A DNA stretch of 64,000 nucleotides from sequence record NC_071039.1. One strand, written 5' to 3'. Of the stretch, positions 19,938 through 64,000 are shown one piece after another; position 1 is the first letter of the stretch; each line of letters opens with the position of its first letter. The notes beneath the pieces were generated by a model. The model was given only the letters and a program-made list of their open reading frames with translations. It did no database searches and was not told the DNA's origin. The position numbers and the translations under genes were made by a program.

Positions 19938-20540
19938 ATGGCAAAAGTGGTTACTGATGTTGATATTGACGTAGCAGATAGGTTAACAGTTTTGTCTGGA
20001 CTACAACACATATCTGCTAAATTAGACGGAGTGGGAAAGAAACATTTATCTGGTGTATATTTTCAACCTATTCCGTTTGATCCGGAACAAAATATGAGCA
20101 ACATAGATTATAAAGTTGCAGAAGAATTAGGTTACATGAAGATTGATCTTCTTAACGTGAGTATATACGAACAAGTTAGATCGGAGGAACATCTAAAGAA
20201 ATTAATAGATAAAGAACCTAACTGGTCTTATTTTGAACATAAACAGATAGTTCAAAATTTATTTCATTTAGGAAATTATGCTGATTTGGCAGTAGGAATG
20301 AAACCGAAAAGTGTAGAACAGTTAGCAATGTTGCTGGCTGTTATACGTCCGAGTAAGTATCATTTACAATATAAACCTTGGGATATTATTGCCAAAACTG
20401 TGTGGGATAAGCCCAGCGACGGGTCATATCATTTTAAAAAAGCACATGCCATTAGTTATGCACTTGCAATTGTTGTTCAGTTGAATTTATTAGAAGAAGA
20501 AGCAGAACAAGAACCCGATCCATTTAAGTTATTTTCCTGA
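19938..20540 (+). CDS. DNA polymerase III alpha (DnaE)-like catalytic fragment (C-proximal piece)
   Basis: TDVDID (PDxDxD), KHLSGV, GYMKIDLL (third Asp), IRP, YHFKKAHAISYA. Confidence 0.8.
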   Translation: MAKVVTDVDIDVADRLTVLSGLQHISAKLDGVGKKHLSGVYFQPIPFDPEQNMSNIDYKVAEELGYMKIDLLNVSIYEQVRSEEHLKKLIDKEPNWSYFEHKQIVQNLFHLGNYADLAVGMKPKSVEQLAMLLAVIRPSKYHLQYKPWDIIAKTVWDKPSDGSYHFKKAHAISYALAIVVQLNLLEEEAEQEPDPFKLFS

Positions 20541-20922
20541 TTAAAGATACTTGTCGTCTTTTTATTCTCTTTTTGAGCATATTGTTAAGAGAAGTACATG
20601 GTCCGAAAACTATTTTTATATCTTTGTTTACTAGGGTTTTTAGGCAATATCTAAATTCTGCCATTTCGTTTGGCATGAATATATTTATTGGTAATATCCT
20701 AGAAGATTCCCACCACCAACAGTCACCACATTGAAGAAATATATCTTTGTGTTGACTGTTTTTTAATGATTTAAAATCATAAAAACTTATATATTTGTCA
20801 TCCGAGTTTTGAATAATTCCTATATAAAAATTTTCTAAGTGTTGTATGCCACTTAAAAATGGAAATTTTTCAGATAATTCTGCTAACTCTTGATCTATTG
20901 TATTATTATTTGTGTTGTCCAT
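20524..20922 (-). CDS. Late hypothetical protein
   Basis: 132 aa; ATAAATA on minus strand at 20942-20948. Confidence 0.6.
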   Translation of the reverse strand: MDNTNNNTIDQELAELSEKFPFLSGIQHLENFYIGIIQNSDDKYISFYDFKSLKNSQHKDIFLQCGDCWWWESSRILPINIFMPNEMAEFRYCLKTLVNKDIKIVFGPCTSLNNMLKKRIKRRQVSLIRKIT

Positions 20923-20941
20923 GATTTTCTTCTCTCTGTAT

Positions 20942-20979
20942 TATTTATTCCTTTAACACTAACCGTTTTAATATAAATA
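20942..20979. promoter_or_regulatory. Divergent pair of late promoters
   Basis: Minus-strand ATAAATA 20942-20948; plus-strand TATAAATA 20972-20979 (T4 late consensus). Confidence 0.7.
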
Positions 20980-20984
20980 CGTGT

Positions 20985-21854
20985 ATGACATTCCATACAT
21001 TATATAAATATGATAATTTTGTAGAACTGTTATATGATAACGGTATACTTTCTTGCAATTGTAAATTATTGGATAATAGACCTATGCATTCACAAACAAT
21101 AAAACTATACAAAGGTGTAGATAATCAAGTAAAATTTAGGGTTTATAATCCTGATAGACGATTAGTAAATATTCATGGACTTTCTGTGTTTGCTAGTTTA
21201 ATTAATACAGAAAATAAAGAACGAGTGCTAGTAAAACAGTGTGATATATATGAGCAGTCTCCTGGCATTTTTATATTGTCTATATTAGAAGGAGATCTAA
21301 TAAATGTGCCTAATGGATATTACACTTTGAGTATAATAGGACAAGAAGAATTTATTCCCGGCATATCTAATATAGACGGACTCCCTGTAATTAGTACGCC
21401 GTTTTATACAAATACATCATCTGATATACAACTGTATGCAGAAGTTAGAGATAGCTTAGAAAAGGCGCCCATAGACACTATAGTTGCTACTGAATGGCGA
21501 AAAGTAATAAACACTGATTATACTTTTAATTATTACAATGCAGGTCCATTTCCATCTAATAGAGTAAAAAATTATAGATCGGGCGTGCATACTATTGCAA
21601 TATATGCAGAAAATTTCACAGGTAAATTTGAAGTATATGGTACATTAGACCAAATTCCTTCGCTAGAAGATGAATTTAGTTCTTGGTTTCCGATTAATTT
21701 AAGATCTATGTTTGATTATATTCAGTTTAATAATTTCACTGGAATAATGCCATATACTTTTCAAGCAAATGTTCTTTGGTTAAAATTCCGTTGGTATCCG
21801 GATTCGACAATCCCAAACAATGGAGAAATTTCTAAAGTAATGTTAAGAAGTTAA
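20985..21854 (+). CDS. Virion protein, BppU-like N-terminal Ig-type region
   Basis: IKLYKGVDNQVKFRV...G.Y.LSI pattern; late promoter. Confidence 0.45.
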   Translation: MTFHTLYKYDNFVELLYDNGILSCNCKLLDNRPMHSQTIKLYKGVDNQVKFRVYNPDRRLVNIHGLSVFASLINTENKERVLVKQCDIYEQSPGIFILSILEGDLINVPNGYYTLSIIGQEEFIPGISNIDGLPVISTPFYTNTSSDIQLYAEVRDSLEKAPIDTIVATEWRKVINTDYTFNYYNAGPFPSNRVKNYRSGVHTIAIYAENFTGKFEVYGTLDQIPSLEDEFSSWFPINLRSMFDYIQFNNFTGIMPYTFQANVLWLKFRWYPDSTIPNNGEISKVMLRS

Positions 21855-21883
21855 TTGACAACGAAAAACGTGCATGCTATAAT
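21855..21883 (+). promoter_or_regulatory. Consensus sigma70 promoter (extended -10) for primase
   Basis: TTGACA 21855-21860, 17 bp, TG-c-TATAAT 21878-21883. Confidence 0.85.
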
Positions 21884-21889
21884 GTGCGC

Positions 21890-22912
21890 GTGATTAGCGA
21901 ACTTTTAAAACAAGAAATAACTTCTAGACTTCCGTATTTAAAGCCAGGAAACAAAGGATGGTTAGTTTGTAATTGTCCTTTGTGTGTCGCTATGGGTACA
22001 ACTGCCGATAAGCGAAAACGGTTCGGTGTTATGTTTGAATCGGATGGAACAATAGGGGTCCATTGCTTTAACTGTACATTTGTAACAAAATGGACTCCGG
22101 GGGCTCTGATAGGAGAGAAAATAGAGTTCCTTCTACGACATATAGGTACATCCGATGATGATATTCGTAAACTCAAATTCCAGGCATTTAGAGAGAAAGA
22201 AGCAGGAGATATATTTAAAACTCCCGAACTAGAATTAAGTATTAAAACTAATTGGACTACTACTAGTCTTCCTAAAAATTCTAAACCTATATTAGAATGG
22301 TTAGAAATATCTCCCAATGATCCCAATCTTCTTAAATGTGCAATGTATGCCTTATCTAGAGGATTTCCGGATATGTCTAATATATACTGGTCCCCCTCTC
22401 AGAAATTTTTATGGAATAAACGAATAATACTTCCGTTCACATATAATGGAAAAGTTGTAGGATATTGCGGAAGATATTTTGAAGAACAACCAAATGAATT
22501 AGAAATAAGAAGATATGAAAATAGATTCCCTGAACATTTTGTGTATGGGTTAGATTCCCAAAGATCCTACAATAGAAAATATGTTATACTAACGGAAGGA
22601 GTAATAGATGCTATAATGGTAGATGGAGTATCTACTATGGGTTCTGTAAGTAAACATCAAGCAAATATAATAAACTCGCTAGGCAAAGAAATAATAGTAT
22701 TGCCTGATTTTGATAGTAACGGCAGTCATTTAGTAGATTCTGCTTTAGAATATAACTGGTATGTATCATTTCCTAATTGGGATAATAATATAAAAGATGC
22801 TAGCGAAGCATCCCAAAAATATGGAAGATTACTTACAGTTCAGAGTATTATATACGGTATCGAACGGAATTCTACTGCCATACGAATTAAAAGAAAAATA
22901 AAAGGAATATAG
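21890..22912 (+). CDS. DNA primase (gp61-like)
   Basis: Zn motif CPLC...HCFNC; TOPRIM TEGVIDA and PDFD. Confidence 0.85.
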   Translation: MISELLKQEITSRLPYLKPGNKGWLVCNCPLCVAMGTTADKRKRFGVMFESDGTIGVHCFNCTFVTKWTPGALIGEKIEFLLRHIGTSDDDIRKLKFQAFREKEAGDIFKTPELELSIKTNWTTTSLPKNSKPILEWLEISPNDPNLLKCAMYALSRGFPDMSNIYWSPSQKFLWNKRIILPFTYNGKVVGYCGRYFEEQPNELEIRRYENRFPEHFVYGLDSQRSYNRKYVILTEGVIDAIMVDGVSTMGSVSKHQANIINSLGKEIIVLPDFDSNGSHLVDSALEYNWYVSFPNWDNNIKDASEASQKYGRLLTVQSIIYGIERNSTAIRIKRKIKGI

Positions 22913-22913
22913 T

Positions 22914-24353
22914 GTGAAACAAAACAAAGACGTAGTAAAGGATTATAATACTGGCGTAGAAGATTTGTTTATAAAATTTTTCTTAACTGACCCAGAATTG
23001 TTTATTAGATGCCGATCTATAATACAACGAGACCACTATTCGGATAAGATTAACCAAAAAGTTATAGATTTTCTAAATGAACATGCAGATAAACATAGTA
23101 CTCTTCCTACTGTAGAACAAGTATCTGCCATAACAGGAAAATCATTTGAGTTATTAGATAACATACATGATAGCCACAAAAATTGGTTTTTGGAAGAATA
23201 CGAAACATTTGCTAGGCATAAACAACTAGAGAATGTAATATTAGAGTCTCCTGATTTATTAGTTACTGGTCGGTACGGAGAAGTTGAACAAAAAGTTAAG
23301 AATGCAGTTTCTATTGCATTAGTTAAAGATTTAGGTACTGATTATTTTGGAGATCCACTGTCTAGACTTAATGCCATTAAAGACAGAAAATCGTTAGTGT
23401 CGACTGGCATGAAAGATTTAGATGCAAAACTGTACGGTGGTTTTGAACGAGGCGCCCTAAATATTTTTGCAGGACAATCGGGCGCCGGCAAATCTATATT
23501 CCTACAAAATATAGGATTAAATTGGGCTATAGCAGGACTTAACGTAGTTTACCTTAGTTTAGAATTAAGCGAAAACTTATGTTCTATGCGCATAGATTCT
23601 ATGAACACAGGTATTGATACAAAAGAAGTTTTACGCAGGGTAGATGACGTAGCTATAAAAGTTATTGAATCTAAAAAGAAAACTAAAGGCTCCCTTCGAA
23701 TTAAGCAATTACCTAACGGTTGTACAGCCAACGATATACGTTCTTATATAAAAGAGTACGAAATTCAAACAGGATTAAAAGTAGATGCAATAATGTTAGA
23801 CTATTTGGATTTGTGTATGCCCATAAGTAAAAAGGTAAGTCCATCGGATCTGTTTGTCAAAGACAAATACGTTTCTGAAGAATTAAGGAACTTAGCAGTC
23901 GAGCTTCAAATTCTATTAGTCACTGCATCGCAGTTAAACAGAAATTCACACGAATCTGTAGATTTTGGACATGAACACATTTCTGGGGGTATTTCTAAGA
24001 TTAATACTGCCGATAATGTAATAGCTATTTTTACAACGCAAGCTATGAGAGAAAATGGAAGATATCAAATTCAATTTCTTAAAACACGTTCGTCGTCGGG
24101 CGTCGGGCAGAAAGTAGATCTTGCGTTTGATCAAAGAACACTAAGATTATCTGATTTAGATCCAGAACAAGCTAGCGCATTATCTGAGAATACAAGGAGT
24201 GTTATTGATAAACTCCGCGCAGATAGGTCATTAGACACACCTAATAATAAAGATACTCATGTACAAAAGACACCTGCTATTGAACAAAAACCGGTAGAAT
24301 CTATGGTAGAAAAAAGTGCCCGGCTTCGTAATCTACTTAGCGGCAACAGATAA
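22914..24353 (+). CDS. Replicative helicase (gp41/DnaB-like)
   Basis: FAGQSGAGKS, LELSE, LDYLDL, TASQLNR, SGGISK. Confidence 0.92.
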   Translation: MKQNKDVVKDYNTGVEDLFIKFFLTDPELFIRCRSIIQRDHYSDKINQKVIDFLNEHADKHSTLPTVEQVSAITGKSFELLDNIHDSHKNWFLEEYETFARHKQLENVILESPDLLVTGRYGEVEQKVKNAVSIALVKDLGTDYFGDPLSRLNAIKDRKSLVSTGMKDLDAKLYGGFERGALNIFAGQSGAGKSIFLQNIGLNWAIAGLNVVYLSLELSENLCSMRIDSMNTGIDTKEVLRRVDDVAIKVIESKKKTKGSLRIKQLPNGCTANDIRSYIKEYEIQTGLKVDAIMLDYLDLCMPISKKVSPSDLFVKDKYVSEELRNLAVELQILLVTASQLNRNSHESVDFGHEHISGGISKINTADNVIAIFTTQAMRENGRYQIQFLKTRSSSGVGQKVDLAFDQRTLRLSDLDPEQASALSENTRSVIDKLRADRSLDTPNNKDTHVQKTPAIEQKPVESMVEKSARLRNLLSGNR

Positions 24354-24393
24354 TAGTAATAGTAGATAAATATAACGAATAGGGGATACTGAT

Positions 24394-24633
24394 GTGAGTA
24401 CTAGACGTAGTATTTTAGAAGAACTTAATAATTATGTTCCTTCTAAGAGCAAAGAAGAATTGATAGAATATAGAGCAGAACATATAATACAATCTGCAAT
24501 TCATCTAATTGAGTATATCGAATCTAATTACTCTGATGCAGACGCAGAGCAATTAGAAAAAAAATTACTTAGTAGTATCAAATACAAGGATGCTAAACGA
24601 TTTAGTAAGTCAGTGAGAAAACTTAAGGAATAA
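24394..24633 (+). CDS. Late hypothetical protein
   Basis: 79 aa; ATAAATA 24366-24372, SD GGGG. Confidence 0.6.
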   Translation: MSTRRSILEELNNYVPSKSKEELIEYRAEHIIQSAIHLIEYIESNYSDADAEQLEKKLLSSIKYKDAKRFSKSVRKLKE

Positions 24634-24635
24634 TA

Positions 24636-25247
24636 ATGAAAAAAGTATTCGAAGCTAGTACATTTGACGATTTCATTGGGTTAAACAGTCCGGTAGCACA
24701 ACAGAGCAGCTATATGCATGAAGCGCCGGATGCATCTGATGCAGAATCTTCTTCTAAAAAGAAGATAGCTTCTAAACAACCTAATAAAAAAGCGCCTACT
24801 AAACGTACTACTAAAGAAGTCGTTAAACAATTTGTTAAAAAAGCAAGTGAAGACAATGCAAAAGTGGGTCCAGAAAAAAAAGAAACTGATCCAGAATATG
24901 TAAAGCAGTTTCTTATAGGTTTAGGATATCCGGAACAGCAGGTGCAAGATATAATTCAAGGTAAATTAAAAGTCCAAACAAAAATACCTGAAATTATTCC
25001 AGATACACAAAAACTAGAAACAAAACCTGAACAACCTAAACAAACACAACGACCTGCGCCCGCTCGCGCTCCTGAGCCAAGACCTGACATAGCAGGCGAA
25101 CTTAACTCCTACACTAAAGCTAATACATTTGAATTGACTCCAGAACAACAGGAAGACATGGAGCGTATTCAAAGATTTGTAACATCAGGTGTGTTAAATA
25201 AAAGACAACTTCTTACGCTAATACGAGAATTAGAAAACGATGACTAA
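24636..25247 (+). CDS. Hypothetical low-complexity protein (internal-head-like)
   Basis: 203 aa, K/E/P/Q-rich. Confidence 0.5.
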   Translation: MKKVFEASTFDDFIGLNSPVAQQSSYMHEAPDASDAESSSKKKIASKQPNKKAPTKRTTKEVVKQFVKKASEDNAKVGPEKKETDPEYVKQFLIGLGYPEQQVQDIIQGKLKVQTKIPEIIPDTQKLETKPEQPKQTQRPAPARAPEPRPDIAGELNSYTKANTFELTPEQQEDMERIQRFVTSGVLNKRQLLTLIRELENDD

Positions 25248-26439
25248 TAAAACTTTTAAAAGATTTTTATCTACAGAAAAATCTAAACAGGAATTAAAAG
25301 ATCTAAACCGTCTCTATGAATCTGTGCGTAACGATATTTCGGAGTTTACTACAATCATAGAGGCATTTATTTCGCCAGGAGAAATAGTAAATATATTCAA
25401 CATTGCTTCTAAGAAAAGAGGATCTGGTAAAGGATTTTTAGGATCCTTTACTTCTGATAACAGAAGTGCATCAAATGCTGCCAATCAAGTTAAACAGCGA
25501 ATAGAGCCTGTAATAGACCAAATATATGATCAGGCAGAACAAACTGAAATATCACATGAAGTTCAGTCAGATGATAAAGAAACTGCCGAAGAAGCTCAGC
25601 GTAAACTTAATAAACAGGCAATAAAAGATAAAGTAGATATAAAGACTGCATTATCTGGCCAAAGACGAGCAGCAGATGTTAATAAAATGGTAGATTATTT
25701 AATGAGACAGCTATCTAATTCTGCCGCCGCTGCATTTATATCATCTACTTTATCTGCCGCCGCAGAATCTGCTAAAAAAGGAACAGTAGCAAATGAAATA
25801 TTTGCTATGTTATCATTTGCATTAGATAAAGTCAATAAAGAATTAGATGATACTTCCTCTACAAATGAATCTATTATAAACGAAGGACCATTGGATTTTT
25901 TATCGAGGGCTTGGTCTAGAGTCACAGACACTATCGGCAATTCAAATGTAGGACAAAATGCATCTAATAAGATAGATGTATTAAAGGGACAATTAGGTCT
26001 AAATGGCGGTCGCGGCGAAGTTGATGCAGATATACTAAAACGAGTATGGAAGAATAAATATCACGGTTCTACTGATAGTGCAGATATAGAGCAAATTCTC
26101 AAAGATTTTAAATTTAGTGATAGAGAAATCAAAAATATATTCAAAGAAGCAGGAATTACAAAAGAAGAAGATTATAATGAAGAATTGGTTAGGGTAGCAT
26201 CTCTTATTAAGAAAGCAGGGTTGCGAGCGCCCGTACTATCGTGGCTAAAAAGAAACCAATCTAGATTGTATAAACTTCTTCCTGAAAGTATCGAATCTCC
26301 TATAATGGAAAAGTCTACTTTATCTGACAAAGATGTTTTAGATATTATTACTCAATTAACTTCTGAGACTGAACATCGAGATACCAATGAACTCGATCCA
26401 GATAATGAATCTAAACAGTTAAATAGAAAACATCGGTAA
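25240..26439 (+). CDS. Hypothetical helical protein (internal-head-like)
   Basis: 399 aa. Confidence 0.5.
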   Translation: MTNKTFKRFLSTEKSKQELKDLNRLYESVRNDISEFTTIIEAFISPGEIVNIFNIASKKRGSGKGFLGSFTSDNRSASNAANQVKQRIEPVIDQIYDQAEQTEISHEVQSDDKETAEEAQRKLNKQAIKDKVDIKTALSGQRRAADVNKMVDYLMRQLSNSAAAAFISSTLSAAAESAKKGTVANEIFAMLSFALDKVNKELDDTSSTNESIINEGPLDFLSRAWSRVTDTIGNSNVGQNASNKIDVLKGQLGLNGGRGEVDADILKRVWKNKYHGSTDSADIEQILKDFKFSDREIKNIFKEAGITKEEDYNEELVRVASLIKKAGLRAPVLSWLKRNQSRLYKLLPESIESPIMEKSTLSDKDVLDIITQLTSETEHRDTNELDPDNESKQLNRKHR

Positions 26440-26454
26440 TATTATTTTCTATAA

Positions 26455-26499
26455 AAATCCCGTTACTGCTTGACGCAATAACGGGATTTTTGCTATTAT
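26455..26499 (+). terminator. Bidirectional terminator overlapping a sigma70 promoter
   Basis: AAAATCCCGTTA...TAACGGGATTTT with TTGACG (26470-26475) in the loop and TG-c-TATTAT at 26494-26499. Confidence 0.7.
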
Positions 26500-26523
26500 A
26501 ACTTCGAATAATAAGGTAATAGT

Positions 26524-27864
26524 ATGAATATTGCAGAAATACAAAAACACAAAGGGATTAAACATTTAGATAACTTAACACTCACAGAATTAGTATCATT
26601 TGTTAATTCCATGCATGAAGCTACTATAACAGAAAAAATAGACGGTTACTATTTATGTATGGGGTTAGATAATATAGGTCTATTTACATCCAGGGAAGGT
26701 AAGGGCGGAACTAGAATTTATAATATTTCTGCATTAGAAAAGACATTTAAGAATGTATACCATATAATGGCCCACACCCTGTTAGAACAAAATAAAGACA
26801 TTTTAATTAAAAGTGGATTAACAGTTGGGGATATATATGAAATCGAAGTATTATACGGGAAGATACCTAACGTAATTGAATATGACGGCATCAATCGAAT
26901 TGTATTTTTAAGAAATTTAAACGGCAATTCGTTTGATTGTGTATCTACAGCAATGGATAACATAAGAGATTGTGTTGAGTTGTCTATACCTGTAGTAAAT
27001 GACAATGGTGTAGGTTTTACTGAAGAGACGAATATAACAGAATGGGAATTTTCTAAATTAGAAAGTATAAAACTATCTAATCTTAATCTTCAATTAGATA
27101 CAATTTTAAAAGATATAGTAGACTTTGCTAGTTCTCCTTCTAAAATAGAAGGGATGACTAATTTAAAGTCAATTGAACTTAAAGTGACCAGTAGGTTAAA
27201 TAGCGAGAAGGTTACCGAAGATAGCAAACAACTCATTAAAGATAATAGAGAGTATATTTTCAACAAAACAAAAGAGTTTTCTTCTAAGTTAAAAGAACGT
27301 ATATTAAATGATATATCTTTAAAATCTAATTTCGGTGCTACCTTTGTAGAAGGATATGTAATACGTACACCTAGTATGCAAGTAAAAATTGTAGATAAGA
27401 CTTTATTTACTGAAGTAAATGAATTTTATCATATGTACAGTAATGCACTTTGTAGATTGGCAACGAATGATATTATCTCCGGACAAACTTCTCTATTTAG
27501 TGAAACTTTTATAAAAGTAGGCAAAGTCCTCGGCAATAAAAATCTAGGCACAGTTAGGCGCAAACAAGTAAACATTGATGATAGAATTCTAAATAATATA
27601 GATAAAAATGTAATATTAGGAATACTATCTGAATCTATAAACGAGCTAGACACTTTTACTAAATCTTATTTAAACAGATATAAAGATATGGAAAAAGTGG
27701 TATATAAATCGTATATGAAATATACATTTAGATATAACGATTCTGTTCATACAAAAACATTAGAAGCAATTTCTAATCTTAGGAATAGATTGTATAATGC
27801 GAAAGAAATAGTTAGTAATTCTAGTTCTGTAAAAGAATTATTTAACAAGTTGGCGTCTATATAG
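26524..27864 (+). CDS. ATP-dependent ligase/capping-superfamily nucleotidyltransferase
   Basis: Motif I TEKIDG, EIEVL, IVFL, motif IV VEGYVIR, motif V VKIVDK. Confidence 0.65.
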   Translation: MNIAEIQKHKGIKHLDNLTLTELVSFVNSMHEATITEKIDGYYLCMGLDNIGLFTSREGKGGTRIYNISALEKTFKNVYHIMAHTLLEQNKDILIKSGLTVGDIYEIEVLYGKIPNVIEYDGINRIVFLRNLNGNSFDCVSTAMDNIRDCVELSIPVVNDNGVGFTEETNITEWEFSKLESIKLSNLNLQLDTILKDIVDFASSPSKIEGMTNLKSIELKVTSRLNSEKVTEDSKQLIKDNREYIFNKTKEFSSKLKERILNDISLKSNFGATFVEGYVIRTPSMQVKIVDKTLFTEVNEFYHMYSNALCRLATNDIISGQTSLFSETFIKVGKVLGNKNLGTVRRKQVNIDDRILNNIDKNVILGILSESINELDTFTKSYLNRYKDMEKVVYKSYMKYTFRYNDSVHTKTLEAISNLRNRLYNAKEIVSNSSSVKELFNKLASI

Positions 27865-55017: not shown

Positions 55018-55084
55018 ATCATAATTGTGTATATAATTTATATATTTGGTGTTATAATGTATACAATAACAAGAGAATAATATA

Positions 55085-55858
55085 ATGACACCACGTTTAA
55101 AGGAATTACTAGAATCACTTATAATTTTAGATACAGAAACTACACATTTAGATACTCGTGTGGCAGAAATAATAGAATTAGGTATAGCGTCTTATACTAA
55201 CAAATGGACTTATAGTAGTGAATTATTTAAACCCAGAGTTAATCATGCGCAAATAACTCCTAAAATAAGTTCTATAACTGGCATAACAGACCGTATGGTA
55301 GAAGGAAAACCTACTTTTGCCGATGTAGTCGACCAATACAAATCTATTACAAACTGCCAACTAATAGTTGCACACAATGCTCCGTATGATAAAAAGGTAC
55401 TAGAGAGATATAACATAGCATCTAGCACTAATTGGTTGTGTACTTTAAAACTTGCACGATATGCATATCAAACTGATCCTACTTTTGAAGAATTTAAATT
55501 ATCTTATCTAAGATATAAATTAATGTTAGATATTCCTGACGATTTCGTAGCGCATAGAGCAGGAGAAGATGCATATATGTGCGGTGTATTATTAGAACGA
55601 ATAGTAACTGATTTAGAGTCTAAGAATAAATTAGATAGTGATATACCGTATGCAGATCAACTTATAGAAATATCTAATAAGCCGTTAATGCTTTCGTCTA
55701 TGCCATTTGGCAAACATAAAGATAAACCCTTAGATGAAGTTCCGATGGACTATTGGATTTGGGCATTAAATAATTTAGATGCATTAGACGAAACAAAACC
55801 CGAATATAATAGAGACTTAGCGTATACATTAGAACAATATTTGAGCGACAAGATATAA
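55085..55858 (+). CDS. DEDDh 3'-5' exonuclease (ExoX/DnaQ-like)
   Basis: LDTETT, AHNAPYD, HRA.ED, C-terminal MPFGKHK. Confidence 0.88.
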   Translation: MTPRLKELLESLIILDTETTHLDTRVAEIIELGIASYTNKWTYSSELFKPRVNHAQITPKISSITGITDRMVEGKPTFADVVDQYKSITNCQLIVAHNAPYDKKVLERYNIASSTNWLCTLKLARYAYQTDPTFEEFKLSYLRYKLMLDIPDDFVAHRAGEDAYMCGVLLERIVTDLESKNKLDSDIPYADQLIEISNKPLMLSSMPFGKHKDKPLDEVPMDYWIWALNNLDALDETKPEYNRDLAYTLEQYLSDKI

Positions 55859-55884
55859 AAATGCCCCGTACGGGGCATTTTTAT
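55855..55884. terminator. Bidirectional terminator between convergent genes
   Basis: ATAAAAATGCCCCGT|ACGGGGCATTTTTAT. Confidence 0.85.
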
Positions 55885-56252: not shown

Positions 56253-56348
56253 AACAATATTTATCATACTAAACTTTAATTATAACTAGACGATGTATAA
56301 TAACATTGCTATTATATACACAACGTAAACAAACACAGGACTTATTAT

Positions 56349-57020: not shown

Positions 57021-57046
57021 CTATTCACTGTAGCTGGTGATAATTT

Positions 57047-57071
57047 AAGGGGACTTCGGTCCCCTTTTTTT
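57047..57071 (+). terminator. UUCG-loop terminator
   Basis: AAGGGGAC-TTCG-GTCCCCTT-TTTTT. Confidence 0.9.
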
Positions 57072-57143
57072 GTGTGAGCATTATTTGTTTAAGGTAATTT
57101 AAATAACACTATATAAATGTCGTGTGTAGTGTTTTAAATGCAT

Positions 57144-57172
57144 TAAAAACCCCGCATAATGCGGGGTTTTTA
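57144..57172. terminator. Bidirectional terminator
   Basis: TAAAAACCCCGCAT-a-ATGCGGGGTTTTTA. Confidence 0.85.
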
Positions 57173-57229
57173 GTAATTGTGTTACAGCGCAAACACATAA
57201 ACATTATACGCTAAATTGTGTTAAAAATG

Positions 57230-57460
57230 CTACTCGTTTATGTAATATTTAATGCGTTGAAATACCAACTCATCATATTCTTTAAATCTTACACGGGTTC
57301 CTAGCCTAACACATTTGTTTATTCCGAGCTCTGCTACTACATCTATAGCATCTTTTATATTTTTAAACTGTAATTGGTTGTTTTCCCAAGAATTCCAGTT
57401 TGTAATATATGTTTTTGCATGCATATAAGATTCGCCGTATGTTTTTTGCTCTTCAGACAT
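57230..57460 (-). CDS. Hypothetical protein
   Basis: 76 aa, SD AGGA, divergent from 57548. Confidence 0.55.
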   Translation of the reverse strand: MSEEQKTYGESYMHAKTYITNWNSWENNQLQFKNIKDAIDVVAELGINKCVRLGTRVRFKEYDELVFQRIKYYINE

Positions 57461-57547
57461 TGTATTTTCCTATATATTAAACGAAAACAACTTGCTTTTG
57501 TATAAAATTATGTTATAATTCTAGCATAATAAAAAGGAGTAAGTCAA

Positions 57548-57805
57548 ATGGATTTTAGTAATCTTCCTAAGAAACAATACACCACTACAGGAAACTATGT
57601 ACAGGCTACTACTATTTTTAAAAATAAAAATACAGAATGGACTTTTGTAGATCTAGAACTAGATTTATCTGATATTGTAAATAAATCTTTGGTAATTTGG
57701 TGTGATGAAAACGTAGAATCTAAATGGACCATGCTCGGCGGATCTAAATTTGGGTTCGAAGATGGCTCGGAAGCGCTAATGTTCAAATTACAGTTTGGAC
57801 TTTAA
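57548..57805 (+). CDS. Small protein, WC.EN family
   Basis: WCDENV..KW...FGFEDGSEALMFKL; SD AAGGAG. Confidence 0.6.
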   Translation: MDFSNLPKKQYTTTGNYVQATTIFKNKNTEWTFVDLELDLSDIVNKSLVIWCDENVESKWTMLGGSKFGFEDGSEALMFKLQFGL

Positions 57806-57820
57806 TAGGAGCTAATAACA

Positions 57821-58021
57821 ATGATGAGCCTAGATGATAAATTGCAAATTATAAATTCTTCTAGTTTAGAAGATTTGTATATTTTCCAAGAAACTTACAG
57901 TAAGCTATTAGAAGATAATAGGTATTGTTATGATAAAGATGTTGAAATACTTTGTTCAACAACTAATGAGCGTATTAGGCAAATCTCACGAGAATTCATC
58001 AACAATACGCATAGATCCTAA
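57821..58021 (+). CDS. Hypothetical protein
   Basis: 66 aa, SD AGGAG. Confidence 0.5.
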   Translation: MMSLDDKLQIINSSSLEDLYIFQETYSKLLEDNRYCYDKDVEILCSTTNERIRQISREFINNTHRS

Positions 58022-58187
58022 TCCCCACACTGCAGAAACATTACACAAACTTATACTCTGGTGTAATGAAAATTGTAGATATAAATGGGAACTAGATGTA
58101 GAACATAATTCAGGTAAAATTACTAGATATATATTTACTTTTAGAAATAAAGAAGAAGCAGTAACATTTGGATTAATACATAAATGA
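57966..58187 (+). CDS. Small protein, WC.EN family
   Basis: WCNENC..KW...FTFRNKEEAVTFGL. Confidence 0.55.
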   Translation: MSVLGKSHENSSTIRIDPNPHTAETLHKLILWCNENCRYKWELDVEHNSGKITRYIFTFRNKEEAVTFGLIHK

Positions 58188-59218
58188 TTAGAATACCGGA
58201 AGAAATTTTTGTAGGAACTAGAATTCCCAATACATCAGGAACACAAAAAACTAACCAAATTCCTGCAGGTGGAATGTGTCCTTACGAAAAAACAAGACAC
58301 CAGAAAATGGAGTCTATAAATAGATATTATAAAAATAGCACTACTGTATACGCAAACCAGCCCTTGCCGGGATTTACTATAATTAAATCATCAACTTGGC
58401 GAGGAAATACTAGTCTGTGGACTGTATGTGATCCTAGAGGATTTACAATAGAGATAAGCTCAAACAACATTACTTCTATTCTAAGTTGTGGCAGCATCTC
58501 AGAAGGATTAATCCAAGACAAATGTGTGTGGGGATATGATTCTGGCGAAAACGTGTTAATACCAGAATCGTCTAGTCTATATAAATCTGCCAGAGAAAAT
58601 ACTAAACTATTAGAGTCGAAAATTAAATTATCCGAAGTTCCTATAGGATCTTGGGTGAAATTAAAATCTAAAGTAGAGTGCGTATATCTAGGATCATTTA
58701 ATTTTATAGAACTTTGCGGACAATATTATTATCAAACTAAGAGTCATTCATATGAATTACTATCTACTGCAAAGAAAAAATTGCTCTTTGCAAAAATAGA
58801 TAATATTAATAATACATTAACATATTTTATAGAATCTACAAATAAGATTGCAACTGTAGGTAATGTATTAGATGAGTTTAGTGACAAAGATGTAAATAGG
58901 GATAATTTTAATAAAATTGCATCAGATCAATACACTAAACTAGACAAATACGATTGCATTGTGCCTTTTAATATCTTTGGTGCATTTAACAAAAAAGTAG
59001 AAATAGAAAATGTAAATGTATCTAGTGATATAGACGAACATGCATATTCTATAAAAATAATGTACCACGTAATGGGACATTTTACACTTGGTAGACGCAA
59101 TTATAATTATTATATATTTGTACCGGATGGCACGCATAAGTTATCTATAGAATGGAATTCTAGAAATTCATTGCCGAGTACAACAGAACACGGATATTTG
59201 AATATTAAATTTAAATAA
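58184..59218 (+). CDS. Conserved phage hypothetical protein
   Basis: DPRGF.IEI..N...IL...CVWG motif; 344 aa. Confidence 0.55.
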   Translation: MIRIPEEIFVGTRIPNTSGTQKTNQIPAGGMCPYEKTRHQKMESINRYYKNSTTVYANQPLPGFTIIKSSTWRGNTSLWTVCDPRGFTIEISSNNITSILSCGSISEGLIQDKCVWGYDSGENVLIPESSSLYKSARENTKLLESKIKLSEVPIGSWVKLKSKVECVYLGSFNFIELCGQYYYQTKSHSYELLSTAKKKLLFAKIDNINNTLTYFIESTNKIATVGNVLDEFSDKDVNRDNFNKIASDQYTKLDKYDCIVPFNIFGAFNKKVEIENVNVSSDIDEHAYSIKIMYHVMGHFTLGRRNYNYYIFVPDGTHKLSIEWNSRNSLPSTTEHGYLNIKFK

Positions 59219-59694
59219 TGAACATATTAGATAAAAAATGGAAAATTAGGCTATTAGAATTAACTAAATTAATAGCGTCTTGGTCTAAAGATCCATCTAC
59301 TAAAACGGGTGCATTAATTGTAACTAAAACCGGAGAACCTGTTAGTTTTGGGTTTAATGGGTTTCCGAAGGGAGTAGATGACGACGAATCTCTTTATAAT
59401 AATAGAGAGTTTAAGTTATTAGCGTGCGAGCACGCAGAACGAAATGCAATATATCAAGCCACTGTATCATTAAAAGGATGTGTTTTATATACAACTCATC
59501 ATCCGTGTGCATCTTGTGCAAGGGCTATTATTCAGTCCGGTATAACACATGTTATAATAGACGAATCTATATTAATACAAGACACTGGATATAATGACCG
59601 ATGGACAGAAGAATTAAAAGTATCTAAATGGCTATTTAATCAAGCAAACGTAACAGTATTAACGTCAGGGGATGACAATGAGCACAAACAATAA
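59218..59694 (+). CDS. dCMP deaminase
   Basis: SKDPST..GA, GFNGFP.G, HAE.NAI, PC..CA. Confidence 0.9.
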   Translation: MNILDKKWKIRLLELTKLIASWSKDPSTKTGALIVTKTGEPVSFGFNGFPKGVDDDESLYNNREFKLLACEHAERNAIYQATVSLKGCVLYTTHHPCASCARAIIQSGITHVIIDESILIQDTGYNDRWTEELKVSKWLFNQANVTVLTSGDDNEHKQ

Positions 59695-60079
59695 TTATAC
59701 TAAATTTGTACAGAAACTACTTAGTGAACCGAGTTCTAATTTCGATGCATATATTGATGCACTAAAAAAGCTCAAAGCAAATGGCTGTAAGATAGAAACA
59801 TTAGATACTGCAAGCCAAGGTATGCTAGCAGAATCGGGTGAATTTGGGGAAATTGTTAAGAAACTTAAATATCAAGGAAAAGAATATACAGATGATGTAG
59901 TATATCATCTAAAACGAGAATTAGGCGACGTAATGTTCTATGTTGTTTCGGCTTGTATTGCACTCGATATTTCCCTAGATGAAATAATTGGCATGAACGT
60001 GGAAAAACTAGAGGCACGGTATCCGGGAGGAAAATTTAATGTCTATGAATCCGAAGTTCGGAAAGAATCCGATATATAA
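59678..60079 (+). CDS. MazG-like NTP pyrophosphohydrolase
   Basis: E.GE..E.VKK, ELGDV.FY, N.EKL..RY. Confidence 0.85.
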   Translation: MSTNNNYTKFVQKLLSEPSSNFDAYIDALKKLKANGCKIETLDTASQGMLAESGEFGEIVKKLKYQGKEYTDDVVYHLKRELGDVMFYVVSACIALDISLDEIIGMNVEKLEARYPGGKFNVYESEVRKESDI

Positions 60080-60476
60080 CAATATTTATAAAGATATAAG
60101 TGGTCAAAGAGACGTATCTAGTGATCCATTTAAATTATATAATAATCCGTTAATGACTCATTTTGATGTAGCAGAACACATATGTTTTGTCAAAACAGTA
60201 TGCGGAAGGATTGTACCGTTATGCAATATATTAGAACTTTCTGAAAAAGTTACGGTCGATTGCGACGTAGGAATTGTGGATATAATCTCAGATAACCAAG
60301 CGCAGCTTTATATAAATTGCAAAACACAGGGAGGAACTGCATGGTATGGGGTTGATGTGTCACCCGATAATTATAGAGAATGTTTAGGTGAGGAATTCTA
60401 TTTTCAAAATTATGCTATAGTGAAACATGCAATTATCTTGGCTTGGACAAAATATATGTTGCAACATGCGCAGTAA
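60039..60476 (+). CDS. Hypothetical protein
   Basis: 145-aa ORF; start uncertain. Confidence 0.45.
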   Translation: MSMNPKFGKNPIYNNIYKDISGQRDVSSDPFKLYNNPLMTHFDVAEHICFVKTVCGRIVPLCNILELSEKVTVDCDVGIVDIISDNQAQLYINCKTQGGTAWYGVDVSPDNYRECLGEEFYFQNYAIVKHAIILAWTKYMLQHAQ

Positions 60477-60523
60477 TAATATATTATAAGTACAAATCAA
60501 CATAACTACCGGGTATCAACGCA

Positions 60524-60793
60524 ATGTCTACGAACAGCAACGCAAAGGATGTTAAGTTCGAAATCGACTTCGACGACGTTGAGCAGTTTAATAAATTTGT
60601 TTCTTTTATGAACAGTCAGTTTGGTCATGGTAGAAAAAATTGGTCGGCAGGATCGCCGCGGTATTCTATTAAACGGATTCTCTCGCAGCGTTCTGCCCGG
60701 TTTGTTAGAACTAAAAAGCCGTTTCCGGTTCGTGTGTACAATACCGACATGGATGCTGAACATATTCTTGTTCTAATAAAACTTTGTTTATAA
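60524..60793 (+). CDS. Hypothetical protein
   Basis: 89 aa. Confidence 0.5.
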   Translation: MSTNSNAKDVKFEIDFDDVEQFNKFVSFMNSQFGHGRKNWSAGSPRYSIKRILSQRSARFVRTKKPFPVRVYNTDMDAEHILVLIKLCL

Positions 60794-60807
60794 TAAAAGG
60801 TAAAGGA

Positions 60808-61068
60808 ATGAAAGTATTAGTCACGGAAGACTCAACAATAATACCACTAAACACAATTGCCGAAGTTAAGTACCAGAAATCCACAGAAGAGTATGTAGTT
60901 TCTTTTATATCTGGAAAAATTAGAATAGAAATTCTAACAAAATATGGGCGTACTCATATAGTAAATTTAAGGGATCAATCAAATATAGATGCATCATTTG
61001 CTACTGCTAGTGATGAAATTATTTATAAAAAATTTCTAGATTCGTGGATTTTGTCACTGAAACCTTAG
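60808..61068 (+). CDS. Hypothetical protein
   Basis: ATG after AAGG. Confidence 0.5.
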   Translation: MKVLVTEDSTIIPLNTIAEVKYQKSTEEYVVSFISGKIRIEILTKYGRTHIVNLRDQSNIDASFATASDEIIYKKFLDSWILSLKP

Positions 61069-61088
61069 GCAACTTTTTGAAAAGAAAG

Positions 61089-61301
61089 ATGCTAAAAATT
61101 ACAATTAAATCTGATTATAATAATACAAGAAAAATTAGAAAATGGTTATTTACTGAATTTAGAAATGATATAGGGTGGCACGACACGTTTAAAGACGGAG
61201 AACGATACGAAGTATTTTATTTTAATTCACCCGAATCTGAAATAATAGCTAGGATAAAATACCCATATATATTTATTAATGGAATATCAGAAAGAACATG
61301 A
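61089..61301 (+). CDS. Small hypothetical protein
   Basis: KWL...GW...FYF; distant WC.EN-family resemblance. Confidence 0.45.
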   Translation: MLKITIKSDYNNTRKIRKWLFTEFRNDIGWHDTFKDGERYEVFYFNSPESEIIARIKYPYIFINGISERT

Positions 61302-61633
61302 AACAATTATATTCCGATTACTTAGTATCTGAAGATAATCCCTTGATGTACATGAGCACTAAACCTGTTTATTATAGTAGATGGTCGCCTGCTTGTAAGG
61401 ATTATTCTAATGACGAAATAGATTCATATAGAAGAAAAATAGATAATATAATAAAAGAAATGCGCCGGACTTCTGAATTTGTTGGAGTAGCTGTAGACGC
61501 CCATGACTTCAAATATATTGCTTTTAAGAATCACGACGATGCTGTGTATTTTACACTAAGTGTTGGGTCTGAATTTACTAGAGTATATGCATGGCGCACT
61601 GGTTTACTTTTTCATATAACGACAAATGACTAA
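61298..61633 (+). CDS. Hypothetical protein
   Basis: IAFKNHDDAVYFTL motif. Confidence 0.5.
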   Translation: MKQLYSDYLVSEDNPLMYMSTKPVYYSRWSPACKDYSNDEIDSYRRKIDNIIKEMRRTSEFVGVAVDAHDFKYIAFKNHDDAVYFTLSVGSEFTRVYAWRTGLLFHITTND

Positions 61634-61928
61634 ACACTGGGACCTATCAAAGTATTCTGTAGATATAGGCGGCGAAGACGGAAATGTATTTTTCCTTGTG
61701 GCAAAAATAAAACGAATAATACAAGAATTATATTCTACAGAAGATTCTATAATTTTTACTAAAATGGCTTGGTTTAAAGATTATGAAGCCATTGGGATCG
61801 ATGCGAAACCGACATACTCAGACATACTAAACAGAATTATAGAACTTACAAATATTACCTACATTAGTACATATAAATTACCACTAGACGACGTACATTA
61901 TACGCTTTATACTACGCATATACTTTAA
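61626..61928 (+). CDS. Hypothetical protein
   Basis: DIGGEDGNVFFL, 100 aa. Confidence 0.5.
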   Translation: MTKHWDLSKYSVDIGGEDGNVFFLVAKIKRIIQELYSTEDSIIFTKMAWFKDYEAIGIDAKPTYSDILNRIIELTNITYISTYKLPLDDVHYTLYTTHIL

Positions 61929-61951
61929 TAACCCGCCGCTGGAGACATGCA

Positions 61952-62452
61952 ATGGCAACTGTGAACCAAAAAAATACTTCTGTAAATGCCCAAAATACCG
62001 ATGCAAATGCAGATCCACTAGCGCACCGCAAGGTAATCGGGGAAAAAGAGAAAAAAGCTATTGCTCGTAAAATGCGAGTATTGCGACTGAAATATTTTTT
62101 CGCCGAATTAAAGGAAAAAATTTGCAGTATTCGTTTTACTAAACATCATCTAATTCATTGGCGAAATACTATGTGGCTCAACGCTGCATTTTTCCTCCGC
62201 GGCTTGATAGGGATTATGACCTTCGGCCTAGTTGAGCTAGAACTAACTGGCAAACCGTCTACTTACCGAGCTGTTTCTGCTGCTGTGCTCCGAGAGAACC
62301 TAGAGCGACAGCTAGCAGAGACAGAAGCATATAAGTCCGGAGAACAAGTCCTAGTAGGTACTAGTAGTTCGGATTCAAAACGGCAAACAGTTGCCGATGC
62401 GAGCGAAGATGAGTTGGACGACTGGCTTAAGCACTTTTCCGGACGCAGCTAA
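61952..62452 (+). CDS. Hypothetical protein, GC-elevated
   Basis: SD GGAG, 166 aa, one hydrophobic segment, terminator after. Confidence 0.55.
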   Translation: MATVNQKNTSVNAQNTDANADPLAHRKVIGEKEKKAIARKMRVLRLKYFFAELKEKICSIRFTKHHLIHWRNTMWLNAAFFLRGLIGIMTFGLVELELTGKPSTYRAVSAAVLRENLERQLAETEAYKSGEQVLVGTSSSDSKRQTVADASEDELDDWLKHFSGRS

Positions 62453-62467
62453 GACCTGCATAGTTGT

Positions 62468-62507
62468 AAAAGGGCACTTGACAAGTGCCCTTTTTTTGCC
62501 ATATAAT
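62468..62507 (+). terminator. Terminator with embedded -35 of next promoter
   Basis: AAAAGGGCACTTG-a-CAAGTGCCCTTTT; TTGACA 62478-62483, 18 bp, TATAAT 62502-62507. Confidence 0.8.
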
Positions 62508-62527
62508 ATAGGAAAAGGAATTTCTAT

Positions 62528-62824
62528 ATGATTAACGGCGATTGGTCTAAATTAACAGATGAAGAATTACAGTCTAGATTGATGAAAGCAAGGGAATATT
62601 TAAATCAAGCACATATGGCTGGCCATCATACCTTAATACACAGTGTAGAAATAACACTGGCACAACTAGAAGAAGAATACGAATACAGGATGACCAAGGC
62701 ACGTAATGAGCAATTAACAAAAGAAAATATGGCAAAAGGTATAGATCCCCTCGCTCCTATTAATTTAGGTAAAGTATCGGGTGACCCAACTGCATTAGAC
62801 CGTATAACAAAAAGGAACAAATAA
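62528..62824 (+). CDS. Conserved hypothetical protein
   Basis: 98 aa, DWSKLTDEELQ.RL. Confidence 0.55.
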   Translation: MINGDWSKLTDEELQSRLMKAREYLNQAHMAGHHTLIHSVEITLAQLEEEYEYRMTKARNEQLTKENMAKGIDPLAPINLGKVSGDPTALDRITKRNK

Positions 62825-63532
62825 ATGTTTGCTGACGTACAAGGGTTTTATTCTTTTAAAAGAAAATTTAAAACACACGTTCTTACTTCTGTATTGAAAG
62901 AAACTGAATGGGAAATTATAATTGGATTCGTTCCTGCAAAGGATGCAAGCAACGGAGAAGATTTAATTGATTTTGAAGTTCAAAAAAATATAATAGATTA
63001 CTGGATTTCTAATTACGTAGAAGGCAGTATTATCGTTGATATGAGCGATACTAGAATTTCTATGTTGTATGATATAGCAGAAAATAACATAATAGGTGTT
63101 CCTAGTTTTCCTAAAGATTTAAAAACGCTAGCAATGGTTTTTCATTCTAAGATTTCATCTATAACAGATGGCAAACTATCTATAGGTGACATTATTATAT
63201 CAGACGATAGTAATTTTAGTTACACATTTGGAAAACATATAGATGAAATATACGATCTTCCTACAATAGACGATATGTTTCCTAATGAAGATGAAAAACC
63301 CATATGGGACGTGCCGTGGTGGGATAGGGTTGATGTAGATACATTTGATTATGTTCCTGATTTAGAAAATCGTACATTAGAAGAAGTACAAATGTCTGTT
63401 TGTACAAGACATGTGTTAAATGATATTAACGATAAATTCGAAGCTGCAATAAAAGAAGAATTGGGAATAAATGTAGAAACTGAAGACAATGTTGTAGACA
63501 TAGTTGATGTTTTAAATGAACGACAAATATAA
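62825..63532 (+). CDS. Conserved hypothetical protein
   Basis: 235 aa, upstream of the DnaE-like N piece. Confidence 0.55.
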   Translation: MFADVQGFYSFKRKFKTHVLTSVLKETEWEIIIGFVPAKDASNGEDLIDFEVQKNIIDYWISNYVEGSIIVDMSDTRISMLYDIAENNIIGVPSFPKDLKTLAMVFHSKISSITDGKLSIGDIIISDDSNFSYTFGKHIDEIYDLPTIDDMFPNEDEKPIWDVPWWDRVDVDTFDYVPDLENRTLEEVQMSVCTRHVLNDINDKFEAAIKEELGINVETEDNVVDIVDVLNERQI

Positions 63533-64000
63533 TAGAAAAGAAATAACTATATCAACAGGCATAAATATCCTTTTGCAAGGGAACCAGCTGGGAGATCCAC
63601 TCTTTGTTGACAACGAAGACATAAACAAGTATAATATGCACGTAGAACAAGTATTAGGGTTGCATAAACTTAATACGACGAAACACTTAACTTGTTCTGT
63701 TGATGAATTTCATGAAAAAATGTCTTCAGAATGGTTTATGCCACCGGAATTTAAAAATATAGATATAGATTCTTTTATATTAAATTTATGTGACACTGAT
63801 GCACAAAAAGAAAGAGTATTAATGGAACTGAAACTCTTTCAAGAACGCGGTTTATACAATATGCTAAGATTTATGATATATTTTGTATCATATATGAGGG
63901 AAAATTGCCTTATCTGGGGTGTGGGTCGCGGGTCTAGTGTTGCATCTTATGTATTATTTTTAATAGGCGTGCATAAAGTAGATTCACTAAAATATAATTT
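63516..64000 (+). CDS. DNA polymerase III alpha (DnaE)-like N-proximal fragment, 3' partial (not in ORF track)
   Basis: Translated by hand: MNDKYNRKEI...RV.MEL.LF...I...MREN..IWGVGRGSSVASYVLFLIGVHKVDSLKYN, matching DnaE GxGRGS...DPL. Confidence 0.8.
   Translation, partial: MNDKYNRKEITISTGINILLQGNQLGDPLFVDNEDINKYNMHVEQVLGLHKLNTTKHLTCSVDEFHEKMSSEWFMPPEFKNIDIDSFILNLCDTDAQKERVLMELKLFQERGLYNMLRFMIYFVSYMRENCLIWGVGRGSSVASYVLFLIGVHKVDSLKYN

Follow-up and report, generated by a model that had tools for sequence, protein, structure and literature searches.

Two distant genes of Pseudomonas phage PA5oct probably encode the halves of a minimal C-family polymerase core

The two polymerase-like genes and their predicted folds

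The window analyzed in this study is a 64,000-nucleotide stretch of the genome of Pseudomonas phage vB_PaeM_PA5oct (Wroclawvirus; 286,783 bp), which matches positions 124001–188000 of record MK797984.1 at a megablast identity of 100%, window position 19229 being record position 143229. It carries two genes, here termed the N piece and the C piece, whose products resemble parts of the alpha subunit of bacterial DNA polymerase III (Pol III alpha, DnaE). The C piece lies upstream of the N piece on the same strand, with 43.0 kb between them (Table 1). Each piece is single-copy in the PA5oct genome, which contains one match to Pfam family PF07733, one to the C piece, and one to the N piece. A first-pass annotation of the window had described a minimal DnaE-like polymerase split into two genes in reversed order, 43 kb apart. 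Both open reading frames (ORFs) and the motifs it quoted (DVDID, KIDLL, FKKAHA, and GxGRGS...D(P/S)L.Y) lie exactly where it placed them, and the order and distance are true for PA5oct and vary among its relatives. Over the compared stretch, ten sister isolates (MIJ3, Paride, Callisto, PAC2, and others) share 98.7–99.8% identity with PA5oct.

Table 1. Positions, within the PA5oct window, of the two polymerase genes and of the other features discussed
Feature	Position	Strand	Size	Remarks
N piece of split minimal Pol III alpha	63516–64025 (window ends at 64000)	+	169 aa	Record 187516–188025, EST35_0288; GVGRGS 63918–63935, DSLKY 63981–63995
C piece of split minimal Pol III alpha	19938–20540	+	200 aa	Second palm half and reduced fingers; DVDID 19956–19970, KIDLL 20139–20153, IRPSK 20343–20357, FKKAHA 20433–20450
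C2H2 zinc-finger protein	19229–19936	+	235 aa	phrog_11058 (9e-61); weak zf-C2H2 match
Upstream gene of packed string	18245–18748	+		phrog_11279
Upstream gene of packed string	18748–19215	+		phrog_11758
Convergent gene	20524–20922	-	132 aa	phrog_11637 (9.1e-35); CGDCWWWE motif; overlaps 3' end of C piece by 17 nt
Promoter-like site	18191–18218	+		TTGACA-16 nt-TG-TATAAT; 12/12 sigma-70 consensus, extended -10; ahead of four-gene string ending in C piece
Promoter-like site	21855–21883	+		12/12 sigma-70 consensus, extended -10 TG; ahead of primase gene
DnaQ-like 3'-5' exonuclease, stand-alone	55085–55858	+	257 aa	PF00929 (1.4e-17); phrog_192 'DNA polymerase exonuclease subunit' (2e-51)

The N-piece ORF continues for eight codons and a stop (25 nt) past the end of the window. 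Reading the rest of it, a check named beforehand, showed that the protein ends at 169 amino acids (aa), lacks catalytic aspartates, and has no palm of its own. It comprises a lineage-variable N-terminal region of ~70 aa, the first half of a palm resembling that of polymerase beta (Pol-beta-like), and a terminal helix equivalent to the FERFL helix of DnaE. Residues 95–161 match PF07733 (DNA_pol3_alpha) with 30.2 bits (cut-off 23.9, E 4.6e-7). Moreover, the protein falls into phrog_11127 (1e-41) and, within the window, fills this 171-position profile up to position 163. It aligns with residues 382–454 of Taq Pol III alpha and 322–392 of the E. coli protein, ending in both cases at the FERFL-equivalent helix.

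The C piece has no Pfam match, and a single-sequence phmmer search of it against the Protein Data Bank (PDB) gave chance matches only. It falls into phrog_11778, labeled 'DNA polymerase' (1.7e-63). A profile of 36 C-piece homologues aligns DxDxD, G-x-x-K-x-D, and FNKSH (E. coli 752–767) to the DnaE proteins of M. tuberculosis and E. coli, with weak, sub-threshold matches to DnaE in the PDB (E 0.05–0.16). DVDID is aligned to PDIDID and KIDLL to KMDFL of M. tuberculosis DnaE1. The local E. coli alignment is shifted by two residues in the repeated Dx pattern, and the equivalence to D401 and D403 rests on the M. tuberculosis alignment. In GenBank, the pieces already carry the name Pol III alpha in the records of PAC2, MIJ3, Phosso, and others.

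Based on the predicted structures, both pieces adopt C-family folds. The AlphaFold2 model of the C piece has a mean predicted local distance difference test score (pLDDT) of 90.5, and its top 16 matches in VIA-align are all C-family polymerases (Z 4.9–8.5; top seven 7.5–8.5). The Z scores are 8.5 for M. tuberculosis DnaE1, 8.5 for Taq, 8.2 for E. coli, where C-piece residues 8–191 correspond to alpha 403–781, and 6.9 for PolC. The first unrelated structure follows at Z 3.5. Foldseek ranks the same proteins first with weak E-values (2.7e-3), and the fold assignment of the C piece rests on the VIA re-alignment and the ranking. The N-piece model was built from a sister-phage variant with one residue different (P0121; pLDDT 84). 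It matches DnaE at Z 8.2–8.6, its residues 70–169 corresponding to E. coli alpha 278–393 (Z 8.2) with a root-mean-square deviation of 2.5 Å. Taken together, the models place the N and C pieces on adjoining stretches of the palm and fingers of Pol III alpha.

Break point, family conservation, and a natural fusion

The break between the two pieces lies in the loop that connects the FERFL helix to the DxD strand. These elements are adjacent in DnaE, as the first-pass annotation had recognized: the N piece has one residue after the FERFL-equivalent, and the C piece has six residues before DxDxD. In the family alignments, nearly all N pieces end in EFL[KR], the last residue always being Lys or Arg, and nearly all C pieces start 4–6 residues before DxDxD. 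Because the junction residues are too few on both pieces and the termini are fixed throughout the family, there is no space for intein fragments, which bears out the earlier statement that the junctions lack intein motifs. Likewise, no intein N- or C-fragment of the kind found in split DnaE lies beside the break. With no extra residues at the junction, the halves must therefore stay separate.

The residues expected of a polymerase active site are the most conserved ones. Over 101 diverse representatives of 50%-identity clusters, D7 and D9 of the C piece are conserved at 98%, D11 at 96%, K68 and D70 at 100%, R137 at 97%, P138 at 99%, K140 and K167 at 90%, and H170 at 95%. In the family alignment of the N piece, W134, G135, G137, R138, G139, and S140 are invariant. 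Thus, the PF07733 match, the invariant GRGS, and the fold match assign to the N piece the Pol-beta-like palm with the G-[GS] loop of a C-family core. Similarly, the alignment and the conservation of 96–100% assign to the C piece the C-family catalytic triad (E. coli D401, D403, and D555, with K553).

A tblastn search matched the C piece to 96 phage records and the N piece to 120. The genus counts within the jumbo-phage clade match for both pieces (Escherichia 34, Pseudomonas 11, Klebsiella 10–11, Erwinia 8, Yersinia 4, Xanthomonas 4, and others), and the surplus N-piece genera (Bacillus, and records with Listeria or Clostridium hosts; matches taken from the list only) fall outside the split-carrying clade. 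Both pieces occur in every lineage checked, namely Wroclawvirus, RaK2, 121Q, GAP32, Vibrio 2.275.O, Atu_ph07, Phosso, Xoo-sp13, SCTP-2, and CM1, and phrog_11778 and phrog_11127 are common to the proteins of PA5oct, RaK2, 121Q, GAP32, Atu_ph07, and XacN1. In no record examined are the two genes close together: they are 31–34 kb apart in the 121Q, RaK2, and GAP32 types, 116 kb in SCTP-2, and 182–224 kb in Atu_ph07 and Phosso, while in Xanthomonas phage Xoo-sp13 and Stenotrophomonas phage CM1 the N piece precedes the C piece on the same strand by ~14 kb. The N homologue of Xoo-sp13 (MN047793.1, 144113–144580, minus strand) is unannotated and lies in the gap between Xoosp13_234 and Xoosp13_235.

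A word search of metagenomes gave 1,050 C-piece and 5,542 N-piece clusters at 90% identity, on contigs of up to 328–355 kb and with fixed lengths of about 190 aa (C) and 173 aa (N). When clustered at 50% identity, the results of an exhaustive profile search comprised 549 representatives. A scan of 185,579 species genomes gave only four loci, all on contigs of metagenome-assembled genomes, and the two that were inspected carry the phage gene cassette described below. These genomes provide no cellular home for the family, which is therefore effectively phage-only.

Among the 150 best representatives of the exhaustive search, one protein (P0311, 375 aa) joins an N homologue to a C homologue. Its residues 80–180 are 44% identical to the N piece and end in KEFIK; a linker of ~9 residues follows at the exact split point, and residues 189–374 are 40% identical to the C piece from DFDID onward. 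Two further proteins of 376 aa (P0391 and P0392) are 78–81% identical to P0311, so that the fusion is seen in three samples from two sources. Since the additional versions were recovered from other samples and from a different source, it is not an assembly artefact. A quick maximum-likelihood tree (IQ-TREE, midpoint-rooted) groups the three fusions in a single clade (SH-aLRT 100) that branches several nodes inside the stand-alone C pieces; therefore, the fusion is a rare derived event. The fused gene (contig L016) occupies the C-piece locus and is followed by the convergent phrog_11637 gene and a phrog_14467 gene, as in PA5oct. The small ORF upstream of it is not homologous to the ORF upstream of the zinc-finger gene in the sister lineage (L015). 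Furthermore, the ESM Atlas model of P0391 (predicted template modeling score 0.82) aligns in its entirety with models of full-length Pol III alpha, with template modeling (TM) scores of 0.77–0.78 by query over 360–362 residues. The fusion is classical Rosetta-stone evidence that N and C act as one enzyme in the DnaE arrangement.

Reduced architecture and gene neighborhood

When all six frames of the complete 286,783-bp genome were searched with Pfam, no PHP, DNA_pol3_finger (PF17657), or HHH_6 domain appeared, in line with the earlier remark that no PHP or HhH domain is seen. Between DxDxD and the third Asp, the C piece has a spacing of 59 residues, compared with 162 in M. tuberculosis DnaE1, and between the third Asp and the histidine of FNKSH, one of 100, compared with 200. 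Such spacings fit an enzyme that has lost the thumb and about half of the fingers before FNKSH. The fingers of the C piece comprise about 125 residues. PF17657 has no match genome-wide, and the C-piece model aligns as far as E. coli residue 781 with the FNKSH-type motif present and conserved; the fingers domain is thus strongly reduced rather than absent. Because there is no PHP or HHH_6 match and the two ORFs encode only 169 and 200 aa, the pair is not to be filed as a DnaE orthologue. Among the ESM Atlas neighbors of P0391, there is a 532-aa cluster, half of it viral, in which alpha, finger, and HhH, and not PHP, are among the common Pfam families, and there are several Bacillota clusters of 355–378 aa with PF07733 and PF17657. 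These other shortened forms of Pol III alpha could represent a reduction series or gene fragments.

A search for a family-B polymerase elsewhere in the genome, which the first-pass annotation had proposed, located PF00136 matches in two ORFs at record positions 217618–221395. In the sister phage MIJ3, this polymerase (PolB) is interrupted by an intein with an HNH endonuclease gene (PMC6892783). The stand-alone DnaQ-like exonuclease in the window may be a proofreading partner; in Turkey3 and XacN1, homologues of it are encoded only a few genes away from the C piece. Its C-terminal stretch barely reaches the Pfam cut-off for QSregVF_b (22.1 versus 22 bits). The T4 gp59 helicase-loader domains PF08993 and PF08994, considered as an alternative identity of the zinc-finger protein, are absent from all six frames of the PA5oct record despite its T4-like primase/helicase module, and a gp59-type loader may be one of the uncharacterized cassette proteins beside the C piece.

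The C piece closes a tightly packed four-gene string located between uvsW/uvsY and the primase and helicase genes. Directly upstream of it lies the gene for a C2H2 zinc-finger protein, whose stop codon is 1 nt before the C-piece start in PA5oct. This protein was found in 94 phage records, whose distribution over genera equals that of the C piece, and its relatives in the ESM Atlas are phage 'hypothetical' proteins only. Its gene is 0–1.1 kb upstream of the C piece in PA5oct, 121Q, RaK2, GAP32, Atu_ph07, Phosso, and Vibrio 2.275.O, and 3.6–11 kb from it in SCTP-2, XacN1, Xoo-sp13, and CM1. In three metagenomic contigs (L015, L019, and L020), it is likewise upstream, directly or with one ORF between, and in L015 it overlaps the C-piece gene by 20 nt. 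The zinc-finger protein is thereby a candidate partner of the C piece, as the first-pass annotation had tentatively put forward; the adjacency is kept across very distant relatives, and the link is a gene-neighborhood argument only.

The neighborhood extends beyond this gene pair. The phrog_11758 gene also precedes the zinc-finger gene in Turkey3 and L020, and the phrog_11637 gene is convergent behind the C piece in Turkey3, L019, and L020, and behind the fused gene in L016. The resulting cassette consists of phrog_11758, the zinc-finger gene (phrog_11058), no or one variable ORF, the C piece, and convergent phrog_11637. It was found in PA5oct, the 121Q-like Turkey3, and the metagenomic contigs L019 and L020, and partly in L015. 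The records of Turkey3 and Turkey5 carry the depositor label 'sliding-clamp-loader small subunit' for phrog_11758, which we do not adopt as it lacks Pfam support. In PA5oct, the C piece ends in an acidic stretch and PFKLFS (20520–20540), and its two closest metagenomic relatives end in IFSLFF. These ends resemble clamp-binding tail peptides, but the rest of the family has no such tail. A clamp-binding peptide was rejected as a family feature, the C-piece tails being short and unconserved across the family.

In PA5oct, Turkey5, Atu_ph07, Xoo-sp13, and SCTP-2, the gene for the gp44-like clamp-loader large subunit follows 3–4 genes downstream of the N piece, in the order N piece, phrog_14844, GroES-like gene, optional small ORF, and clamp loader. 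Because the genomes are broadly collinear, this synteny is a lead for a clamp connection and not evidence of one. In PA5oct, a 235-aa ORF without a family match (62825–63532, plus strand) overlaps the N-piece start by 17 nt. It was not retained as part of the system, since its homologues occur only in the 11 Wroclawvirus records, which marks it as an insertion specific to this lineage within a block that is otherwise conserved.

PA5oct depends on the host RNA polymerase (PMC7318152). The promoter-like sites of the region are no more numerous than in shuffled sequences, and the two perfect sites in Table 1 are a lead only. In four RNA-seq libraries from one 2020 study, 82–97% of the sampled words of the zinc-finger/C-piece stretch are present, and contigs of the same libraries cover the N-piece region without differences. 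These contigs are compatible with transcription of both regions.

Proposed activity and alternative explanations

We propose that the two genes encode the halves of one minimal C-family polymerase core, which would assemble non-covalently and act as a distributive accessory polymerase. From the sequences and the models, we consider this account probable, though well short of certain. The N piece would contribute the first palm elements, including the G-R-G-S loop that would hold the triphosphate of the incoming nucleotide. The C piece would contribute the strand with the first two catalytic aspartates, D7 and D9, the strand with the third, D70, beside K68, and the shortened fingers. The two would co-fold into one Pol-beta-like palm with the GS loop from N and the three metal-binding aspartates from C. 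The assembled pair would then catalyze two-metal, templated addition of deoxynucleotides (dNTPs). The dNTPs are the likely substrate because the FNKSH-type motif is conserved with its histidine (H170), the counterpart of E. coli alpha H760, which has been proposed as the sugar gate.

Because the PHP, thumb, clamp-binding, and HhH parts, and apparently the OB part, are missing and a complete T4-like family-B replicase is present, the role would be accessory and the enzyme distributive, unless partners such as the zinc-finger protein supply DNA binding. The zinc-finger protein possibly works with the pair in this way. Since uvsY, uvsW, primase, and helicase genes adjoin the C piece, the pair may belong to the replication-recombination machinery of the phage and carry out short-patch synthesis, for example in recombination-dependent replication, in gap filling, or in the extension of primers or displacement loops (D-loops). 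The proposal of the first-pass annotation stands in part. Its core, a non-covalent, intein-free C-family nucleotidyltransferase of two subunits, which here accompanies a separate replicase, has good indirect support from the contiguous folds, the co-occurrence, the conserved residues, and the natural fusion. Priming, repair, or end processing, which it named as specialized roles, are possible functions.

Several observations weigh against this account. The missing thumb and most of the fingers may leave too little grip on DNA for templated synthesis, and the conserved E166 of the N piece is aligned to R452 of Taq alpha, which contacts the triphosphate in the ternary complex; this is unlike simple DnaE chemistry. 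In the isolated N-piece model, the palm-loop region is less confident (pLDDT about 70). Gene neighborhoods are weak functional evidence in these largely collinear genomes, and the RNA evidence consists of assembled contigs only, for which DNA carry-over is possible and which give no timing. Furthermore, we found no experimental study of the split enzyme among the papers searched.

The absent thumb, clamp-binding, and HhH parts, the apparent lack of an OB part, the fingers of only about 125 residues, and the Glu in place of the triphosphate-contacting Arg of Taq alpha would also suit an active nucleotidyltransferase that is not a templated DNA polymerase. Many chemistries are known for the Pol-beta-like fold, and, as in other families with this fold, the pair could act as a template-independent terminal transferase, use NTPs to make primers or RNA, or produce a nucleotide-derived compound. 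However, the residues that are retained and conserved most strongly are those specific to DnaE polymerases, among them the histidine of the FNKSH-type motif that corresponds to E. coli H760, the fused relative superposes as a unit on the palm and fingers of Pol III alpha, and no other Pol-beta-fold family rises above Z 3.5 in the structural matches; we therefore regard such an activity as unlikely. It is also rather improbable that the proposed core is one part of a larger machine, in which the zinc-finger protein, and perhaps phrog_11758 and phrog_11637, supply DNA grip or recruitment, and which extends primers or D-loops before handing over to the family-B replicase. A handover of this type is known from Bacillus, where DnaE hands over to PolC. 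If true, it would mean a new C-family polymerase architecture and a new division of labor in a T4-like replisome.

The constant separation of the two genes, in different conserved neighborhoods, could alternatively mean that N and C form no complex, each acting with other partners (C with the zinc-finger protein, N with clamp-loader-linked proteins), or that only one of them is catalytically relevant. We hold this to be quite unlikely, as neither piece alone holds a complete Pol-beta-like core, with the GS loop on one protein and the catalytic aspartates on the other, both occur together in all lineages checked, and the natural fusion joins them exactly at the split point. Finally, phages often carry fragments of host-like proteins, and PA5oct owns a complete replicase, so that the pieces might be non-catalytic mimics of host Pol III alpha that disturb the host replisome, or decaying dnaE remnants. 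Alpha binds epsilon, beta, and tau through its PHP domain, clamp-binding region, and C-terminal domain, and it is precisely these domains that are missing. Moreover, the conservation of the active-site residues excludes decay: catalytic residues conserved at 96–100% over hundreds of 50%-identity clusters and lengths fixed at about 170 and about 190 aa are incompatible with it and unneeded for mimicry. Both of these explanations are accordingly very improbable.

Relation to published and known systems

The split enzyme is already known. Iyer, Anantharaman, Krishnan, Burroughs, and Aravind (2021; Viruses 13:63, section 3.4.1, Figure 3b) described a phage-specific, split minimal Pol III alpha in group 2.2 jumbo phages, in which an N-terminal NTP-binding protein and a C-terminal protein binding Mg2+ and template are encoded by distant genes beside a family-B polymerase (PMC7824862). 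The remark in the first-pass annotation that similar pieces had been noted in related jumbo phages was therefore right, and its two-subunit model matches that description (PMC7824862). The authors suggested cooperation with the B-family enzyme, in the synthesis of one strand or in repair, and proposed the minimal form as a model of the ancestral enzyme (PMC7824862). The Paride/PA5oct lineage is treated as group 2.2 (PMC10761892). PA5oct likewise has two distant single-copy genes of the same PHROG families and a T4-like family-B polymerase, and its pair is the same entity. In a search of the text of Iyer et al., a zinc finger was nowhere mentioned in connection with the split enzyme (PMC7824862). 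Our additions are modest: the fusion clade, the conserved zinc-finger cassette, the conservation figures, and the position of the N piece near the clamp loader. The discovery itself has been published, and these additions sharpen an experiment that a cultured phage makes easy.

No relative of the bacterial replicase core smaller than this pair, with 369 residues in two chains, is known. The phage clade that carries it is large and environmentally abundant, comprising hundreds of 50%-identity clusters, and also has a eukaryote-like family-B replicase. If active, it would define the minimal requirements of C-family catalysis; it also bears on whether the bacterial replicase evolved from an ancestral minimal form or the minimal form arose by reduction. 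A second role for a polymerase in T4-like replication or repair might also come to light. Both PA5oct and Paride are available in culture, and RNA-seq and proteomic data exist for PA5oct, which makes them practical systems, and the natural single-chain fusion is an easy construct for biochemistry.

Compared with the bacterial DnaE and PolC proteins (E. coli 2HNH, Taq 2HPI/3E0D, M. tuberculosis 5LEW, and G. kaustophilus PolC 3F2B), the phage pair shares the Pol-beta-like palm with its GS loop, the DxD and third-Asp triad with the neighboring Lys, and the FNKSH-type fingers motif (Z 8.2–8.6). In contrast, DnaE is a single chain of about 1160 aa, and the phage form lacks the PHP domain, the thumb-sized insert, the clamp-binding, HhH, and tau-binding parts, and apparently the OB part. 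Relative to M. tuberculosis DnaE1, the DxDxD–KxD spacing and the fingers up to FNKSH are each about 100 residues shorter.

The split DnaE of cyanobacteria (dnaE-n/dnaE-c) is likewise a C-family polymerase made from two distant genes. In Synechocystis and Nostoc, the halves carry intein fragments, and protein trans-splicing joins them into full-length DnaE. That protein is split at a different site and ligated, whereas the phage halves are without intein fragments. The split family-B polymerases, namely the two-subunit archaeal PolB of Methanothermobacter and the PolB of PA5oct and MIJ3, are a precedent for a catalytic core divided between two genes, but they belong to another polymerase family with a palm resembling the RNA-recognition motif. 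Moreover, the interruption of PolB in PA5oct is a mobile element between adjacent genes, while the split of Pol III alpha is ancient and intein-free.

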